This document shows, piece after piece, positions 15,999-25,000 of a stretch of DNA of 64,000 bases; the stretch's first letter is position 1, and each line of letters opens with the position of its first letter. Source of the DNA: Phaeosaccion multiseriatum (taxonomy: Eukaryota; Protista; Ochrophyta, other classes); contig OZ218954.1 in the NCBI GenBank assembly GCA_965112735.1, positions 2,356,001 to 2,420,000 of the forward strand, read 5' to 3'. The notes under the pieces are model-generated. The model ran no database searches and was not told the DNA's origin. It saw only the letters and a list, made by a program, of their open reading frames with translations. Both the position numbers and the translations under genes were made by a program.

Positions 15999-17954
15999 TC
16001 AGTCGCCAGTCCACGCCTCCTCTTCGTCCCCCGCCTCCTCGCCCTCGTCCTCGTCGTCCTCTAAATCGAGCCCTCCGTCCCCCAGCCTGAATCTCTTACT
16101 GCTGCTCACCCTCTCCTCCGCCTCCTCTCGATCCTCTTCGCCCCCCACTACTCGGCTCCTCGGCCAGAGCCTTTGAGGGACCTCCTTCCCCAGCAGGAGG
16201 CATTCGTGGCATAGCCATGTCTCGTCCTTGGGCGCAATGGCGAGCATGGTCTTCCACGGCCCCTCCGGGAGGCACTTGGTGTGGTAAACCCTCGGGCATC
16301 CATCGCAGCAGTTCAGCAGGCCCATCTTCTTGTTGTCGCATATCCTGCAATTGGCTTCGTTTCTCTCGTCGTCACTACTGTCTTGCATCATGCAGTCGTA
16401 CCTTGACGTGTAACCGTCACCACCTTGCCCAGACACCCCTCCCGCCCTTTCCCCGTCCTCGTTTCTCCTTGCATCTACTGCGCCATCCAGTCCTCCCGTC
16501 TTGCCATCTCCAGTGCCCAACTCGTCCTCATTCTCCTCAGGATCAGTATCCTCCTCCTCCTGCTGCTGCAGCCCCTCTCGCTTCGGCGGGGGTCCGAAAT
16601 TCGTCGTACATCCCTCTCCATACACTTTCCAAGCCTTCCGGTCATACGCTGAAGCCGCTTCCGCCTCTGTATGGAAAGAGCCTAGCCAGCGAATGCCCCT
16701 TCCCTTTACCCATAGCTTTGCCTTCCATGCGCCGCCCTTCTTGTTCTTCCCCCCCCCCCCTGCGGCTCCTGCAGCTTCTGCCGCTCCTGCCCCCGAACTC
16801 TGTTGTTGCACTTTCCCCTGCGCTGCGCGATTGTAAGGCACACCGCTGACTCCCAGGTAGGCAGACGACTTCTTGCAGTTCAGTTCCGGAGATCGGGCTC
16901 TCTTGGCACTTTGATGCTTCTTGCTGTGATGAGAACTGTTGTAACTACTACCAGTGTTGGTGCTGCTGCCAGGCGTGGAGGAACTGTGAACTCTCCCCCC
17001 CCCGCTCTTCTTGCCAGAGCCGCTGCTAATGCTGCTAATGTTGCTGTGGGAATAGCCAGTCACGGCAGTTCCCGACGTGGAAATCGCCGCCAGTGCGTGC
17101 GATGCAGCCAGCCTCTGCGAGGGTCTGTCTGTTCCCGCCCGCCCCCCGCCTCCACCTCCTCCTCCTCCTCGTCGCGCGTTTGCGCCAGCGGCTGCCGCTG
17201 GTGGTACGGTGGGCCTTCCTGTGGCCGACGCTACCGCTGCTGGGGGGTGAAGTACCCCCCCTGCTGCTCCACCTGATGCATTAGAAGACGATGATGGAGG
17301 GGGGACGGCCTGCACAGGAGGTACAGGCAACACTGCCCCAGTCCTTCGGACAGCATCGGCTGTTTGGTGGTTCCCGTCTGTCGCCCCGTTTGGCGGTGCG
17401 GCTCCTCCTGGCGCCGCAGTCGCTGCTCCTGCGGCTGCGGGTGGAACAGTGGCCTCGGGGTGTGGCAGCACATCTCCCTGAGGAGTGGGTCTTGATGGTG
17501 TAGGCTGGTCTGACCGAGAAAGCAGAGCGTCCTTCACGTCGTCCGGTGTCGTGGTTAGTCCTGCACGCAGGAGAGGGGGGGGGCTGGGGTGTTACGGGCG
17601 TTGGGTCAAACAGCACACCTACCGCCCCCTTTGCACACCTGATCGATGCATTCCCATCGCAGATCCCAGCCCCTTTTTTGGGTTCGCTGTCTCCCCTTGC
17701 GAGCCCCAGATTACTGAACCTTGCCACCAGCCCCCCGCTCCTCCAATCGATCTACTCGCTCCTGCTTGACCCTGGCGCTGTGCCTTGACCCTTAACGTCG
17801 AGAAAGGCCGAGTTCTTGAGCGATCTTTAGCGCGCTCTGCGCCGCTGCACAACCAAGGCGAATAGGTGCGCCATTTGTGATATTTAATGATCTCGGGCGC
17901 TCCACGACGCAACGTGACATCATCATAAGGTGGTAGGCAGCAGGGCGGAGGCAT
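15999..17954 (-). CDS. AP2/ERF-domain + PHD-finger nuclear protein (start either about 17656 or 17954)
   Basis: AP2: SSAYLGVS...WKAKLWVKGRGIRWLGSFHTEAEAASAYDRKAWKVYG...TNF. PHD C4HC3: CRICD..LNCCDGCPRVYHTKCL...WLCHEC. One intron at about 17566-17640. Confidence 0.85.
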
Positions 17955-18000: not shown

Positions 18001-21000
18001 ATGGATGGAAACGATGAGAAGTTTACGCCCCTCCGGAACACGAGAGGCACCCAGTCATATCATCCCATGATATCTCATGCAGGCGAGGCCGAAATAGAGG
18101 GATTCCAGCCGCTTCGCAAGGTCGGTGTAGTACGGAAGGAGCAAGAGGGTGTGTGTCTAAATGCCAAGGGACAAGACAGGATAGTAGGGTTTCTCTTTGT
18201 GCGAAGTTCTCGTGTGCGAGCTGTGACAAGACAGGATAGTAGGGCGTCAGGTGTGCCTCGTGGAATGTCGTCCCCACAAAGCCCTCCTTCACAACTCTTG
18301 TTGATATCTTCTCCTCAGGCGCGGTCCGACGCCCACCAGGACTATACCACCCGCCTGTCCTTCAACGGAGCTGCCGCGAAGGAGTCTCTGAACACCATGT
18401 GGGAGAAGAGGGACCCTTGGAGGATGCTGAAGAAGAACGTCAGCTTCGCTGTGCCTCAAACTGACAAGTGAGTGGATGAAAAGCCAAGCAGGCAGGACCC
18501 AAGTAGCGCGATGGAGAGCCTGGTGTGTGCTGTTGGTAGGCTTGCGTAGTAGACACCACAGGCTCAGGAGCGAGATTGACGTCTCTCTCTCTCTCTCTCT
18601 CCATCTCTCTCCCTCGTCTGGGTTACGAAATGACCGAAAAGACCCTGACCACCATCCCTCATCCCGCCTCATGCCCTCCCTCCCCTGCCATCCCTCAGAG
18701 CTGTGGTTCGGAGGGACGCCGCGGTTGTGGTGGTGGACCCGTTCTCGTCAGGGGCGATTCTCGCCAAGCGGGCTGTCTCGGAGGGCTTTCACTGCGTCCG
18801 CGTGTTCAGCGAGTACGACAGCCCTGTGGCGAAGCTCGTACAGACGGGTATGGCACTGGAGTTTGACGCCACCTTTCAGTTCGACGACAGAAACACGAAC
18901 CAGGTTAGTTGACGGCGTACGAGCCAAGAGGCAGGCAGGCGGGCAGGCAGGCGGGCAGGCAGGCAGGAGAGCAGGTGTGGTAGTGGTGGATGCGAGGTGG
19001 GTGCATTGGTTGTTTCCTCTTTTGACGCTGTCTTGTAATCCGTGGACGCGCCCCTACGTCCACGTACGCACAGGATGAGGCTGTGCACGAGCTCGTGGTG
19101 GAGTTAAAGAAGCTTCCGTGGCCCATCATTGCCGTGTTGCCCGGTGCAGAGACCGGCGTGGAGCTTGCAGACATGTTGGCCTGTCGAATGGACATGCGCA
19201 ACAACGGCATTGAGCTCTCCGCCGCGAGGCGCAACAAGTACATGATGGGAGAGACGGTGCGAGCCGCGGGGGTGAGGGCAGGGGTTGCTAAAATGTGCTA
19301 CACAGACGACGATGTGGAGCACTTCCTCACAGACTTCAACCCTACGCCCTTTAGTGCCGTTGTCAAGCCGCTGGAGAGTGCGGGCTCGGACGATGTGTTT
19401 TTGTGCTCGTCACAGGATGAGGTCCGATTAGCCTTTTCGCATATCAATGGCAAGGTGAATGGTCTGGGATGCGTGAATGAGGGCGCTCTTGCCATGGAGT
19501 ACTTGGATGGCACTGAATACGTCGTGGACAGCGTGAGCAGGGACGGCGTGCACAAGATTATCACCATTTGGGAGTACGACAAGCGCAGCGTGAACGGAGC
19601 CAACTTTGTATACTTTGGAATGCAGGTCAAGTCTACGGAGGGGAGTGTGGAACAGGAGCTCGTAGAGTATGCCTGTAGCGTGCTGGACGCCATGGGCATT
19701 AAGAACGGCCCCGGCCACATGGAGGTCAAGTACACGAGCACAGGACCCTGCCTGGTGGAGGTGGGGGCGAGGTGCCACGGGGGAGAGGGCACTTGGCAAC
19801 CCATTGCGCAGGAGTGTTTGGGTTACAACCAAATCGACGCCACTTTTGACTGCTACGCGATGCCGCAGAATTGGTCCAGGATTCCAGACCGACCGAACAA
19901 ACTGCTCAAGTGTGGGCGCGAGGTGTTCCTGGTGGCGAGGGAGAGTGGCATGCTTCGGGCACTGCCCGGCTTGATAGAGGTGCAAGAGCTGGCGTCGTAC
20001 AGGCGGAAAGAGGTGATGGTGAAGGAGAGGGAGTTCATGTACAAGACCATTGACTGCTTCACCAGGCCGGGCTCCGTGCAGCTCGTGCATCAAGACCACG
20101 ACGCTGTGCAGGTGGGTAGTGGGGAAGAGGCGCGGCGGTCGAAGGGGGGGGTGGGGGGGGGGTAAGAGGGGGGTAGCAGAGAGAGGGGACCGAGGGACAA
20201 GGGGGGGGGGGGGGCGAGAACTTCACAACCACCTGGTGTCTAGGGGAGGAACACCCTCTTTCCGCCACTCGTTGAGGAAGTCTGCAGATCGCAGCTCTCT
20301 CTCTCTCTCTCTCACTTAAGTGTAACCCCATCACTGCAACCCACCGCATGCACATTGTGTCATCGCAGAGAGACTTTGATCGTATCCGACAGCTGGAGAT
20401 GCGGGGCCTGTTCGACTTCGAGATCATCTGCCCCAGTCCGCTTCCCGTACCCGCCGTGGTGGTGGTGGACCCGTTCAGCTCGGGCGCCATCCTCGCTGCC
20501 CGCGTCCTGCAGCACAAGCTACGCTTGGTAATGGTGTTCAGCGAGCTCGACTCTGTCATTGCCAACCTGGTGCAGCATGGTTCGAGCGTCTTGCCCGACG
20601 TGACCATCCAACACGACAACACTCTGGACCCAGAGACGGCCATCCAGCAGACCATGTCCTCCCTCGCCGAGCTGCCACACCCCATCATTGCCGTGTTGCC
20701 CGGTGCAGAGACCGGCGTGGAGCTTGCAGACATGTTGGCCTGTCGAATGGACATGCGCAACAACGGCATTGAGCTCTCTACCGCGAGGCGCAACAAGTAC
20801 ATGATGGGAGAGACGGTGCGAGCCGCGGGGGTGAGGGCAGGGGTTGCTAAAATGTGCTACAAGGACGACGATGTGGAGCACTTCCTCACAGACTTCAACC
20901 CTACGCCCTTTAGTGCCATTGTCAAGCCGCTGGAGAGTGCGGGCTCGGACGATGTATTTTTGTGCTCGTCACAGGATGAGGTTCGATTGGCCTTTTCGCA

Positions 21001-21808
21001 CATCAATGGCAAGGTGAATGGTCTTGGATGCGTGAATGAGGGCGCTCTTGCCATGGAGTACTTGGATGGAACTGAATACGTCGTGGACAGCGTGAGCAGG
21101 GACGGCGTGCACAAGATTATCACCATTTGGGAGTACGACAAGCGCAGCGTGAATGGAGCCAACTTCGTTTACCATGGCATGCAGGTCAAGTCTACGGAGG
21201 GGCGTGTGGAACAGGAGCTGGTGGCCTACGCGCGCCAGGTGCTGGACGCCATGGGCATTGTCAACGGCCCCGGCCACATGGAGGTCAAGTACACGAGCAC
21301 AGGACCCTGCCTGGTGGAGGTGGGGGCGAGGTGCCACGGGGGAGAGGGCACTTGGCAACCCATTGCGCAGGAGTGTTTGGGTTACAACCAAATCGATGTG
21401 TCACTGGACGCCTACATAAAGCCAGACCTTTGGGACGCGGTGCCCATGGAGCCGACGAAGCTGCTGAAACATGGGAGAGAGGTATTCCTGGTGTCTTTCC
21501 AGTCGGGTGTGGTCAAGTCCGTACCGTGTGTGGACCGCATCCGAGCCCTGCCCTCTTTCCGGACTCTGGAGATGACTGTACAGCCCGGCAGCCTGGTGCA
21601 CAGGACAGTGGACTGCTTCACTCGCCCAGGAGCCGTGCAGCTGGTCAACGAGAGCGAGGCGGCTCTGCTAAAGGACTACGAATTCCTGAGGGAGCTCGAG
21701 CAGCGCAAGGGCGTGACCGGGCTCTTTGATGTGGATGAGCGTGACGTGGCACTTCCTCCCGCGCCTTTGGCGCAAGAATCTGCACGACCTCCACCCGTCC
21801 TCATTTGA
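18001..21808 (+). CDS. tandem double ATP-grasp ligase (L-amino-acid ligase / NikS-DdaF-BacD-like), multi-exon
   Basis: Two complete modules, each with VVVVDPFSSG, PGAETGVELAD, RRNKYMM, VKPLESAGSDDV, MEYLDGTEYVVD, GPGHMEV and LVEVGARCHGG. They are joined in frame across the intron at about 20112-20369 (AVQ|RDFDRIRQLE). Confidence 0.9.
19122..21396 (+). repeat. internal near-identical direct repeat of about 715 bp (19122-19837 vs 20681-21396)
   Basis: Long runs of identical nucleotides, including synonymous positions, at offset 1559. Confidence 0.95.
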
Positions 21809-22047: not shown

Positions 22048-25000
22048 ATGGCCCCATGTCCTCGTCTGGCCATCGTAGCTCTAGTGCTTCCCTTCGCATT
22101 CGCGTATCAACCTTCGGTCTTGAAAGTATCAGGAGGGGGAGAAGCCAAGAATAGGTATCGCTTCGATCGTGGACCCGAAGGGACAGACGATGGGAAGAGG
22201 GCATTTTCCCATTATTATAAACGGCAGAGAGTGTGTGCAAAAGGTTAGTGAGCACTCCTTCTGCTTCCCTCCAGCTGGCGACCCACTCATATGCATTTCC
22301 CTTGTGTCACCTTCACTAATTCCCAGCTGCTTCAATGACCGTACTCCGAGCTCATAAGCTCTAATATGCATCTCCCTTGTGTGTCACAGAGGACTGGGAT
22401 TCGTTCTACGCGTGCCTGCAGCGGCCTCAGCCCATCGACTTCAGGATCAACTTGGTAAGCTCGTGTGGGGTTGTGTATACTAGTGTTGTAGGGGGGAGCA
22501 AGCCTAATGGGGTGTGCATGTCTGAACCACGACCAGCACCACGCGAACAGTCCATGGGTCATCAGTGCCCTGCGGGTAGCTCTGGAAGAGGAGGCGCGTG
22601 GACGAGGGGGGAGCGGGCAATGGAGGTTGACTCCCCTGCCCATACTGAAACAAGGCACGGGCTGGAGATTGCAGCGGTGGCAGGAGAAGCCGGGGGGGGG
22701 GGGTGAAACCCTCCCTATCCACGGGGAGCATGAGCTCTCGCCTGTGCTGGAATTTCTCCATGAGCAGCAGTTGGTGGGGGCTTTGAGCCGGCAGGAAGTT
22801 GTTTCGATGCTTCCGCCGCTGTACCTCGACCCTAGGAATGGTGATGATATATTGGATGCGTGCGCTTCTCCAGGCTCCAAGTTCCTGTAAGTAGTAGGCT
22901 CTTTTTGCCGCAAGACTGAACTGCCAACAACGGCGACCCCTCACAGCCTTGCACTAGCTGGACAGACCAGACAAGCCCCTCTTTTTTTGTCCCGCCAATC
23001 AATCAAACTCGGTGGCTGTTCAGAGTGAGCTTGTCGACGGCACACTCATACACTATTGGCGCTCCTCCTCCTCTTTCATCCTCTCAGGCAGGTCCAATGC
23101 TTGCTGTTTGAGCGGCGTCTTGCTGCCGCTGCAAATGGCCGCGGCGATGAGGACCGGGGAGAGCTTTCAAAGCCTGGTCTGCTCGTGGCAAATGAGCTGG
23201 AGAGGAGACGGGTGAGAGCGCTTTGATTCCCGCCCCTGCCGTGCTCGTGCCCCATCCCCATGCTCAACGTCTACGAAACCCTCGCCCCTCGCCTTTAGGT
23301 GTCTCGACTGAGGGCACGCGTTCAGATCGAAGGCAGTCCCGAGGGAGCGGCTGCTACCGTGCTCTTAAACTGCGATGCCCGATCTCTGCCGGCCTTTGGC
23401 GGACTGCTTTATGACGGCATTATGGTAGACGTGCCCTGCTCAGGTGACGGCACGCTCAGGAAGTGGGCAGCAGGTGACCAGACTCAGGGTGTCGGCGAGG
23501 AAGATGCTTCTCAGAGACAAGGAGACGAAGAGAGCACGAGCGGAGGGCAACGAGGGCAGAAGGCAGCAGATGGGGGCAGTGACCGCGGAGAGAGCGACCA
23601 AGACACGCAAAGCGACGGGTGGGCGAGGTGCGGCCAACAGGGTGACGGGTGGGCGAGGTGCGACCAACAGGGTGACGACATCCTGATCGATTTCTCCTTG
23701 ACTCGCGTTCACTCGTGCCTCTCACAGCTGGGACGGACGAGCAGGGCTTTCCTTGCACAAGATACAGCTAGACATTCTGCATCACAGCCTGGGGCTGCTC
23801 AAGGAGGTGGGTGCCCAGTCAATTGCTGCATGAACTCGGCTACTCCAAGTTTGTGTCTGAAGGTCGCCTCTTGTGTGTTGTGGTCCGCCGCAGGGAGGAA
23901 GGCTCGTGTTTTCAACCTGCACGCTGGACCCATTACAGAACGAGGCAGTCATCGCCGCTGCACTGCACCGGATAGGAGCTGCAGAAGCAGCAGCAGCAGC
24001 AAGCGACGGATGCGGCTCCATGGGAGGCGCGGGCGGTGAAACGAGCCTCGTGCCCATGGAAGATATTGAGGGCATTGCCTCACAGCCCGGCCTCACGGAG
24101 TGGTTGGTGCCAGACCCCCGTGCATCGGACGTGCTCTACCACTCCTGGGAGGAGGTCCCCTTGGTAGTTAGACATACCCACGCCATACAGAGCAACATGT
24201 TTCCTCCAGGACGAGGCGTGGGAGGGGCGCGCGTGAGGGCTCAGCTCGAGAAGGGATGCAGACGCTACTTACCGCATGACAACGATTCGGGTGGGTTTTT
24301 TATTGCAGTCTTTGAAAAGAGGACTGGTGGGGGCAAAGCGGCACCCAAAGAGGACAGGGGGGGGGTTCACAGAGTGGGTGGGAGCAGCAGAGAGGTAGAT
24401 GGCGTGGGAGCGGGCGCCTTGGCGCGAGAGCATCGGGCAAGTAGAATAAAGGAGCTGAGGAGCAAGCTGCGCAGGCATACGCCTCATCAACCAACGGGTA
24501 GGGAGGAGGAGGAGGAGGAGGAGGAGGAGGAGGACGCGAAGGAGGGTGACGCCAGGATTGCAGCACTAGAAGCGACTCCCCTACAAGCCTCCAGTCGGAG
24601 TATTGAGGACCTGTATGTGCAAACGACATCTCCACAAGTGGTGCAGAGCATCTGCGATTTTTGGGGCTTGCCGGGAGGAGAGGAGCAGGGGCTGCGGACA
24701 GTTGCGGGCGGTGACAGAGGGACTACCCGCGCCAACAGTGGCGCAGCAGCAGCGGTGGGCTTTGCGCCATCGAAGCTGCTGTGGGTGTCCACGGATCGCA
24801 CTGCACGAAGCAAGATAGTGCTCGTGTCAGCGGCAGGTGAGCTTGTCTTTCTCACACCCTTCTCTGTGTCGCGTGGTCAACGCCGTCCCTTTCGTCTTTG
24901 ATGCCCCCATTGCCATAGTGGACGCCTTTCTACGCCAGAGGTGGGCACCCAATTCAAAAGTCTCTGCCACTCTTCGAAGGCGCTTGAAGGCATATGGAGC

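Follow-up and report, generated by a model that had tools for sequence, protein, structure and literature searches.

A tandem L-amino-acid ligase gene of Phaeosaccion multiseriatum, its stramenopile orthologues and the homogenised core of its two modules

We analysed a 64,000-nucleotide stretch of the genome of the alga Phaeosaccion multiseriatum (GenBank assembly GCA_965112735.1, contig OZ218954.1, positions 2,356,001 to 2,420,000, hereafter termed the window, in whose numbering all coordinates are given). A five-exon gene at 18001-21808 on the forward strand encodes two complete ATP-grasp modules of the L-amino-acid ligase (LAL) type. According to our preferred reading, to which we assign a probability of about 0.6, the product is a single-chain two-module LAL that belongs to a family of stramenopile orthologues, would form two amide bonds within one pathway and has had its catalytic cores made alike by gene conversion. 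Antibiotic and toxin pathways of bacteria are the familiar setting of L-amino-acid ligases, which are known there as small enzymes with a single module. The tandem fusion is apparently an undescribed variant of this known kind of enzyme, in a family whose members are already present in databases, uncharacterised or misnamed.

Two ligase modules in one predicted chain

Both modules are ATP-grasp units of the LAL type, each with one copy of the motifs VVVDPFSSG, VKPLESAGSDD, EYLDGTEY, GPGHMEV and EVGARCHGG, and they are 79% identical to each other over 345 amino acids. Profile and homology searches were conducted with single exons, and questions concerning a full-length protein were put to two database orthologues, P0001 and P0123. 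The Pfam family ATP-grasp_4 (PF13535, cut-off 27) matched module 1 with 44.5 bits (E-value 1.6e-11) and module 2 with 43.3 bits (3.9e-11), and ATP-grasp_3 was likewise above its cut-off. LAL_C2 (PF18603) was barely above threshold in module 2 (29.7 bits, cut-off 29.4) and gave no match at E <= 0.1 in module 1, despite which the C part of module 1 aligns with that of module 2. The NCBIfam family NF005543 (PRK07206, of unnamed function, cut-off 302) matched module 2 in exon 5 with 333.7 bits (1e-99); exon 4 of module 1 alone, without the 68 N-terminal residues encoded by exon 3, scored 289.8 bits. The equivalog cut-off of DdaF (NF041595, 840) was not reached, with 158 bits (3e-46, module 1) and 175.8 bits (1e-51), nor was that of BacD (NF053745, 850), with 14.8 bits (0.0068). 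No match to the RimK or TTL families appeared in the Pfam and NCBIfam searches of the exons, and no profile of carbamoyl-phosphate synthetase (CPS) in either collection rose above threshold. The motifs listed in an initial annotation of this DNA, including the pairs YFGM/YHGM and EYACS/AYARQ by which the modules differ and the N-terminal RLSF, KNVSF and F.PLR, were all found where it had placed them.

The solved structures that the sequence of module 2 matched all bear the name L-amino acid ligase: 30vh_A (6.4e-46), 3vot (BL00235; 2.6e-9) and 4wd3 (RizA; 1.4e-8). An AlphaFold2 model was made for the orthologue P0123, not for the window protein, from 41 aligned orthologues, and reached a predicted local distance difference test score (pLDDT) of 83 and a predicted template modelling score (pTM) of 0.75. 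One ATP-grasp unit of this model was superposed by Foldseek on 3vot, 4wd3 and 3wnz (YwfE/BacD) with template modelling (TM) scores, by target length, of 0.81, 0.76 and 0.71. The top whole-length match of the model was the CPS large subunit (9e-28), with a TM score of 0.27-0.28, a root-mean-square deviation of about 26 Å (26.6) and 12% identity, domain order alone being common to the two. The CPS large subunit (CarB/CPS1) is a single chain with two homologous ATP-grasp halves that arose by internal duplication and carry out different ATP-dependent steps, the phosphorylation of bicarbonate and of carbamate; it also possesses a tunnel and two further domains, one for oligomerisation and one allosteric. 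The window protein shares the tandem ATP-grasp order, whereas the tunnel, oligomerisation and allosteric domains of CPS were undetected in it.

The gene model, obtained by reading the DNA and its open reading frames (ORFs) and checking the phases by script, comprises 983 codons (2949 coding nucleotides) and four introns of 198, 231, 170 and 257 nucleotides, all of them GT-AG with consistent phases. Exon 1 (18001-18120) carries the start codon and the first part of a conserved N-terminal extension (F.PL..., EGFQPLRK), ends at the donor aag/GTCGGT, where the slash marks the splice site, and aligns with the N-termini of brown-algal, Triparma and chrysophyte orthologues. Intron 1 (18121-18318, 198 nucleotides, GT..AG, phase 0) contains no stop codon, and its removal joins GF.PLRK to ARSE or ARSD as in the orthologues (GFQPLRK/ARSD in the window, GFVPLRKARSE in the orthologues). 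Exon 2 (18319-18467) holds the second part of the extension (RLSF ... WEKRDPWRMLKKNVSF) and aligns to W..RDPWRMLKKNVSF of brown-algal orthologues. Exon 3 (18699-18903) encodes the N-terminal subdomain of module 1 (VVVDPFSSG...) and shares 74-78% identity with module 1 of the nearest orthologues as against 54% with module 2 of its own protein. Exon 4 (19074-20111) supplies the ATP-grasp core of module 1, with its ATP-grasp_4 match and intact catalytic motifs, and its C-terminal subdomain. Intron 4 (20112-20368, 257 nucleotides) separates the modules, has the borders cag/GTGGGT ... CGCAG/aga in phase 0 and contains in-frame stops, a poly-G run and a (CT)n run. Exon 5 (20369-21808) encodes the inter-module linker, the complete module 2 and a C-terminal tail, and closes with the stop TGA at 21806-21808. 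The initial annotation had recognised a spliced gene, which stands, and had placed at its start a single ORF at 18001-18471, which does not, as it spans intron 1; the frame had appeared uninterrupted because that intron is free of stops and of a length divisible by three.

That the two modules form one chain is a strong case, resting on homology. All four predicted exon junctions match continuous sequence in two-module orthologues, some of them transcriptome-derived. At the inter-module junction, 20111/20369, the spliced sequence reads AVQ/RDFDRIRQLEMRGLFDFEIICP (also given as ...AVQ/RDFDRIRQLEMRGLFDFEIICPSPLPVPAVVVVDP) and matches the continuous inter-module linker of the orthologues, which is uninterrupted in P0001, P0016, P0019, P0004 and P0121-123; by source, proteins with the uninterrupted linker come from Ectocarpus, Undaria, Aureoumbra (a transcript), Aphanomyces and metagenomic relatives. 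Contigs from public DNA runs that span 19808-20710 join module 1 physically to module 2. Alternatively, two adjacent genes might lie here, module 1 ending at the TAA at 20163-20165 within what we call intron 4 and module 2 starting at the ATG at 20348. This arrangement draws on the stop met 17 codons after 20111 in the unspliced reading, on the ATG that opens the ORF of module 2 and on the fact that the runs for this organism are of DNA only. It would, however, deprive module 1 of its C-terminal helix, which is common to every orthologue and whose homologue lies at the C-terminus of module 2; moreover, the spliced junction equals the conserved linker residue for residue, intron 4 is a canonical GT-AG intron in phase 0, and the transcript-derived orthologues are single ORFs. 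We consider two separate genes very improbable. The initial annotation's proposal of one gene with two complete LAL-type modules is thus borne out by Pfam, motif and junction evidence, the single transcript being inferred from homology.

Two features of the introns were observed in passing. Within the stop-free intron 1, two copies of a direct repeat, each about 20 nucleotides long (gacaagacaggatagtaggg), were seen by eye about 55 nucleotides apart (18165-18250). In intron 4, the contigs of all four DNA runs break in the poly-G and (CT)n region at 20143-20220, and in one run slight differences in length occur at 20144-20218, probably because the homopolymers vary in length or the region is hard to sequence.

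A stramenopile family and its single-module relatives

Relatives were collected in two word searches, one with module 2 as query and hits of at most 838 amino acids, which returned N-terminally truncated two-module proteins, and another with the 799-residue orthologue P0001, which returned full-length relatives. The closest matches to the window in the former were from Chrysoparadoxa (74%, partial), Phaeothamnion (70%) and Ectocarpus (65%), which would most likely place the host among ochrophyte algae close to the brown-algal (PX) lineage. Two-module orthologues of 950-1060 amino acids with the same N-terminal extension were found in brown algae, bolidophytes (Triparma), pelagophytes (Chrysophaeum, Aureoumbra), chrysophytes (complete MMETSP transcripts of Ochromonas and Paraphysomonas) and oomycetes (among many, Phytophthora infestans PITG_20994, Plasmopara, Pythium, Saprolegnia and Aphanomyces). 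Both N-terminal start motifs and both catalytic motifs occurred in 54 of the 219 fetched proteins, and nearly all those longer than 840 amino acids were two-module. The window gene carries every mark of this orthologue group, namely the extension motifs, two LAL modules and the GLFDFE..C linker, at the predicted junctions, and in trees of the N and C regions its pieces group with the modules of brown algae and of jgi123. By these sequence characters it is an orthologue of a stramenopile-wide two-module family, to whose members it is 43-68% identical, with the same linker and N-terminal motifs. The initial annotation had described an assembly line in an alga; with its public orthologues, the system is no peculiarity of this one.

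The orthologues bear the labels "hypothetical", "ATP-grasp domain-containing", "biotin carboxylase", "Argininosuccinate lyase 2" and "Dapdiamide A synthase", and none of the functional names among them passes the family cut-off in the profile search of the window exons. "Dapdiamide A synthase" and "ddaF" are, judging from the profile scores, over-annotations, the window modules being related to DdaF but falling far below its equivalog cut-off. The initial annotation had raised the possibility that this is an already characterised enzyme; full-text literature searches yielded no paper on a two-module stramenopile LAL family, and the cut-offs of both DdaF and BacD are missed.

Two further kinds of record were noted. 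P0028, deposited as "ddaF [Symbiodinium microadriaticum]" (602 amino acids), begins in the middle of the first module and has a complete second module; it may represent the two-module form in a dinoflagellate, or else a contaminant or fragment record. The stramenopile proteins P0075, P0088, P0090, P0117 and P0118 (440-470 amino acids; MMETSP transcripts and Aphanomyces cochlioides) are single-module paralogues, so that fused and unfused forms coexist in stramenopiles.

In prokaryotes, a pattern scan of 185,579 species genomes detected 48 relatives, all single-module and at most 35% identical. The initial annotation's description of the bacterial relatives as normally single-module enzymes of ribosome-independent peptide biosynthesis agrees with these 48 proteins and with two loci whose gene content is that of natural-product clusters. 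In the locus from Sphingomonas sp. (L001, 2643-13067), the LAL gene lies with genes for a CmlA-like diiron beta-hydroxylase, a free-standing A-T didomain and an FkbM methyltransferase, and further for an EamA exporter, a thioesterase, a GNAT protein and a TonB-dependent receptor; by its predicted gene content this locus would make a beta-hydroxy amino acid peptide through a hybrid pathway of carrier-protein and ATP-grasp type. The locus from Sphaerisporangium corydalis (L015, 448-13764) encodes two LALs, a haem-oxygenase-like oxidase, a LysE exporter and a DeoC-type aldolase with DHQS-II, as well as an arylamine N-acetyltransferase, a P450 and an amidase. The pair of DeoC-type aldolase and DHQS-II is typical of aminohydroxybenzoate formation, and the locus is a candidate pathway for an aromatic pseudopeptide.

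The window protein has the same fold and domain order as the DdaF/PRK07206 group, BL00235 (3VOT), RizA/RhiM (4WD3), YwfE/BacD (3VMM, 3WNZ) and 30vh. In common with the bacterial LALs it has the VVVDP.S.G start, the ATP-grasp core and, by a borderline match in module 2, LAL_C2, together with the K, E..L.G.E, H.E and E.G.R..GG positions. The bacterial enzymes are single-module proteins of about 400-470 amino acids encoded in biosynthetic clusters, whereas the window protein is eukaryotic, is encoded with introns as a tandem fusion, has an additional conserved extension and lies away from pathway genes.

Homogenised cores and divergent flanks

The resemblance between the two modules is unevenly distributed. 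A core tract of 717 nucleotides in module 1 (19122-19838, forward strand) is about 95% identical at the nucleotide level to its counterpart in module 2 (20681-21397, same strand), and the flanks of the tract differ at about 50% of nucleotides, close to saturation, as against about 5% within it. Copy-specific contigs of 169 nucleotides, at 19565-19733 for module 1 and 21124-21292 for module 2, are present in all four DNA runs; since the variants particular to each module turn up on these independent contigs, the two near-identical cores are genuine copies. Inside the tract lies a small island of divergence (19659-19703, partner 21218-21262) in which 14 of 45 nucleotides differ, compared with about 3% in the remainder of the tract. 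It corresponds to EYACS..K in module 1 and AYARQ..V in module 2, and the YFGM/YHGM difference is also present.

At the protein level, the core of window module 1 is 96% identical to that of window module 2, and each core is 66-72% identical to the same module of the nearest orthologues. The relation is inverted in the N part (54% between the window modules, 70-78% to the same module of the nearest orthologues) and in the C part (44% as against 59-66%). The core homogenisation of the window gene is far above that of most orthologues (53-77%), with 70-77% in Triparma and the brown algae; in the metagenomic orthologue ena129 identity between the modules reaches 98% for the core and 84% for the C part.

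Region by region, the trees tell a similar story. In the core tree, modules 1 and 2 of the window are sisters with a support of 100, and the modules pair by lineage, separately in brown algae, chrysophytes, pelagophytes and oomycetes, which amounts to nine changes of module label. A clade uniting the module 1 cores of PX type was also tried and is rejected by the approximately unbiased (AU) test (p-AU 0.0003). In the N and C trees, built on short regions, the ochrophyte module 2 sequences fall together, with supports of 81-82 in the Shimodaira-Hasegawa-like approximate likelihood ratio test (SH-aLRT), and there are four label changes; in the C tree, a clade with a support of 95 unites the module 1 C parts from the window, from jgi123 and from the brown algae. 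The best reading of these sequences would be an old duplication followed by recurrent gene conversion restricted to the catalytic core, very recent in the window gene and in ena129, with N- and C-subdomains that, on the tree evidence, have kept separate module identities in ochrophytes. A middle that is alike in both modules, flanked by differing ends and interrupted by a small divergent patch, is best explained as a gene-conversion mosaic and not necessarily as a design for specificity. The initial annotation had noted patch and ends and proposed two different specificities; the 95% tract and the region trees speak for the mosaic.

Both modules look active. When both modules of 28 proteins were aligned (28 + 28 sequences), the Lys of VKP, S.G, E..L.G.E, W.YDKR, the H.E strand, E.G.RC.GG and RR.K were invariant in module 1 as in module 2, and because every ATP, Mg and catalytic motif is kept, neither half appears pseudoenzyme-like. 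The pair of intact LAL-type sites has stayed together in one chain over a broad range of stramenopile evolution. The initial annotation had singled out an inactive module as a finding that would overturn its proposal; judged by these motifs, neither module would be inactive.

Possible function and its alternatives

From LAL chemistry, each module would use ATP to turn a carboxylate into an acyl phosphate, which it would couple to an amine, with release of ADP and phosphate. The two sites, joined by a short conserved helix and the linker, would most likely make two amide bonds in one pathway, what one site produces serving the other as substrate, as with the paired free-standing LALs of bacterial clusters; the outcome would be a small peptide or amino-acid conjugate. 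Two separate LAL genes occur in each of the bacterial loci L015, L030 and L037, and in rhizocticin biosynthesis RhiM and then RhiC act as paired LALs in sequence (PMC13579937). Two LAL active sites serving one pathway are our working model for the fusion. In the paired systems, however, the ligases are separate polypeptides and not close paralogues, whereas the window gene places them in one chain with cores made nearly identical by gene conversion.

Several observations weigh against this preferred reading. The AU test on the C region (85 columns) retains the window C parts as sisters (p 0.24), and the oomycete modules group together in the core, N and C regions alike, a pattern that may reflect a duplication younger than the stramenopiles or conversion that at one time extended over the whole module. 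Conserved module-specific columns across ochrophytes number just one at an 80% threshold and about five at 60%. The neighbouring genes indicate no pathway partner, substrate or product. Finally, the public runs containing the locus are four, from one sample and study; they keep the introns and have no splice joints, so that they are DNA and hold no RNA evidence for splicing.

The scarcity of module-specific columns makes a covalent pseudo-homodimer a serious rival, in which both modules would perform the same single ligation and the fusion would merely fix in one chain the dimer into which free-standing ATP-grasp ligases assemble, with neither an assembly line nor a tripeptide. Repeated homogenisation has left the cores interchangeable, very few conserved residues tell the modules apart, the modules of ena129 are alike to 98% in the core and to 84% in the C part, and the pTM of the two-module P0123 model suggests a defined packing. 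Against this, the N- and C-subdomains retain their module identity across ochrophyte classes at 44-54% identity within the protein, which is unexpected if the halves are equivalent and conversion is free, and the bacterial clusters with two distinct LALs provide a precedent for sequential use. Our preference for two different ligations rests on the distinct identities that the N- and C-subdomains have retained alongside interchangeable cores, and we hold the pseudo-homodimer to be unlikely, with roughly the standing of a minority view. An iterative ligase, one or both modules of which would add the same residue repeatedly to give an oligo-amino-acid or to modify a peptide or protein in the manner of RizB or RimK, seems to us improbable. 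Iterative ligation of RizB and RimK type is known in the ATP-grasp superfamily, and the conserved disordered N-terminal extension could offer a docking or primer region; the best matches of the modules are, however, LALs and DdaF, module 2 has its LAL_C2 match (29.7 against 29.4 bits), and the RimK and TTL families are unmatched. Module-specific residues were also considered as specificity determinants and rejected, the columns being too few for distinct pockets. The tripeptide that the initial annotation derived from two different specificities accordingly stays plausible but is not borne out by some five conserved columns.

The N-terminal extension comprises about 90 residues. The initial annotation had pointed it out, and it proves to be real and conserved: the short motifs F.PL, EGF.PLRKA.SE and W..RD.W..L.K..SF are kept from ochrophytes to oomycetes. 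RLSF, KNVSF and two F.PLR motifs are present in the N-terminal ORF of the window gene, and no Pfam family was found for exon 2 or the extension. It is probably disordered, as residues 1-108 of the orthologue model (P0123) have a pLDDT below 50, and would fit a regulatory or docking tail; phosphorylation at its R/K-x-x-S-F sites is a reasonable idea but speculative. Seen by eye, the protein has no hydrophobic signal-like start and is for this reason probably cytosolic. The oomycete orthologues P0214, P0192 and P0189 start with MGN and have a small residue or Ser/Thr at position 6 (residues 1-8 considered), which would fit an N-myristoylation signal, whereas ochrophyte proteins are without the MGN start and the window protein begins MDGN.... 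More boldly, and with less than even confidence, we can tentatively picture the family as a stramenopile-wide two-step synthetase, independent of non-ribosomal peptide synthetases, with a small peptide or amino-acid conjugate as its lineage-wide product, in which recurrent conversion within the gene would keep the cores interchangeable and the N- and C-subdomains would be module-specific, and the extension would regulate or localise the enzyme, possibly through myristoylation in oomycetes.

The genes on either side, a PHD-finger gene and an RsmB/NSUN-like methyltransferase, are unrelated to such a pathway. On the reverse strand at 15999-17537, divergent to the ligase gene, lies a long ORF of low complexity, rich in Gly, Ala and Ser, with a PHD finger just below the Pfam cut-off (E 1.5e-4) and, by eye, an AP2-like stretch (YLGV...WKAKLW...GSFHTEAEAASAYD). 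On the forward strand at about 22507-24901, split ORFs with weak matches to RsmB/F (RNA cytosine methyltransferases of NSUN type) probably constitute a multi-exon methyltransferase gene directly downstream of the ligase gene.

An intron-bearing tandem LAL distributed from kelps to Phytophthora points to an unrecognised, probably ancient metabolite of a major eukaryotic lineage to which key marine primary producers as well as important crop pathogens belong, and the two-module family offers a direct handle for finding it. For annotation, the names "argininosuccinate lyase 2", "dapdiamide A synthase" and "biotin carboxylase" are unsupported for members of this family. The gene is also a clean natural case of domain-restricted concerted evolution, the core being homogenised and the flanking subdomains kept apart, a pattern relevant to the way ATP-grasp ligases divide up specificity and to their engineering for peptide synthesis.

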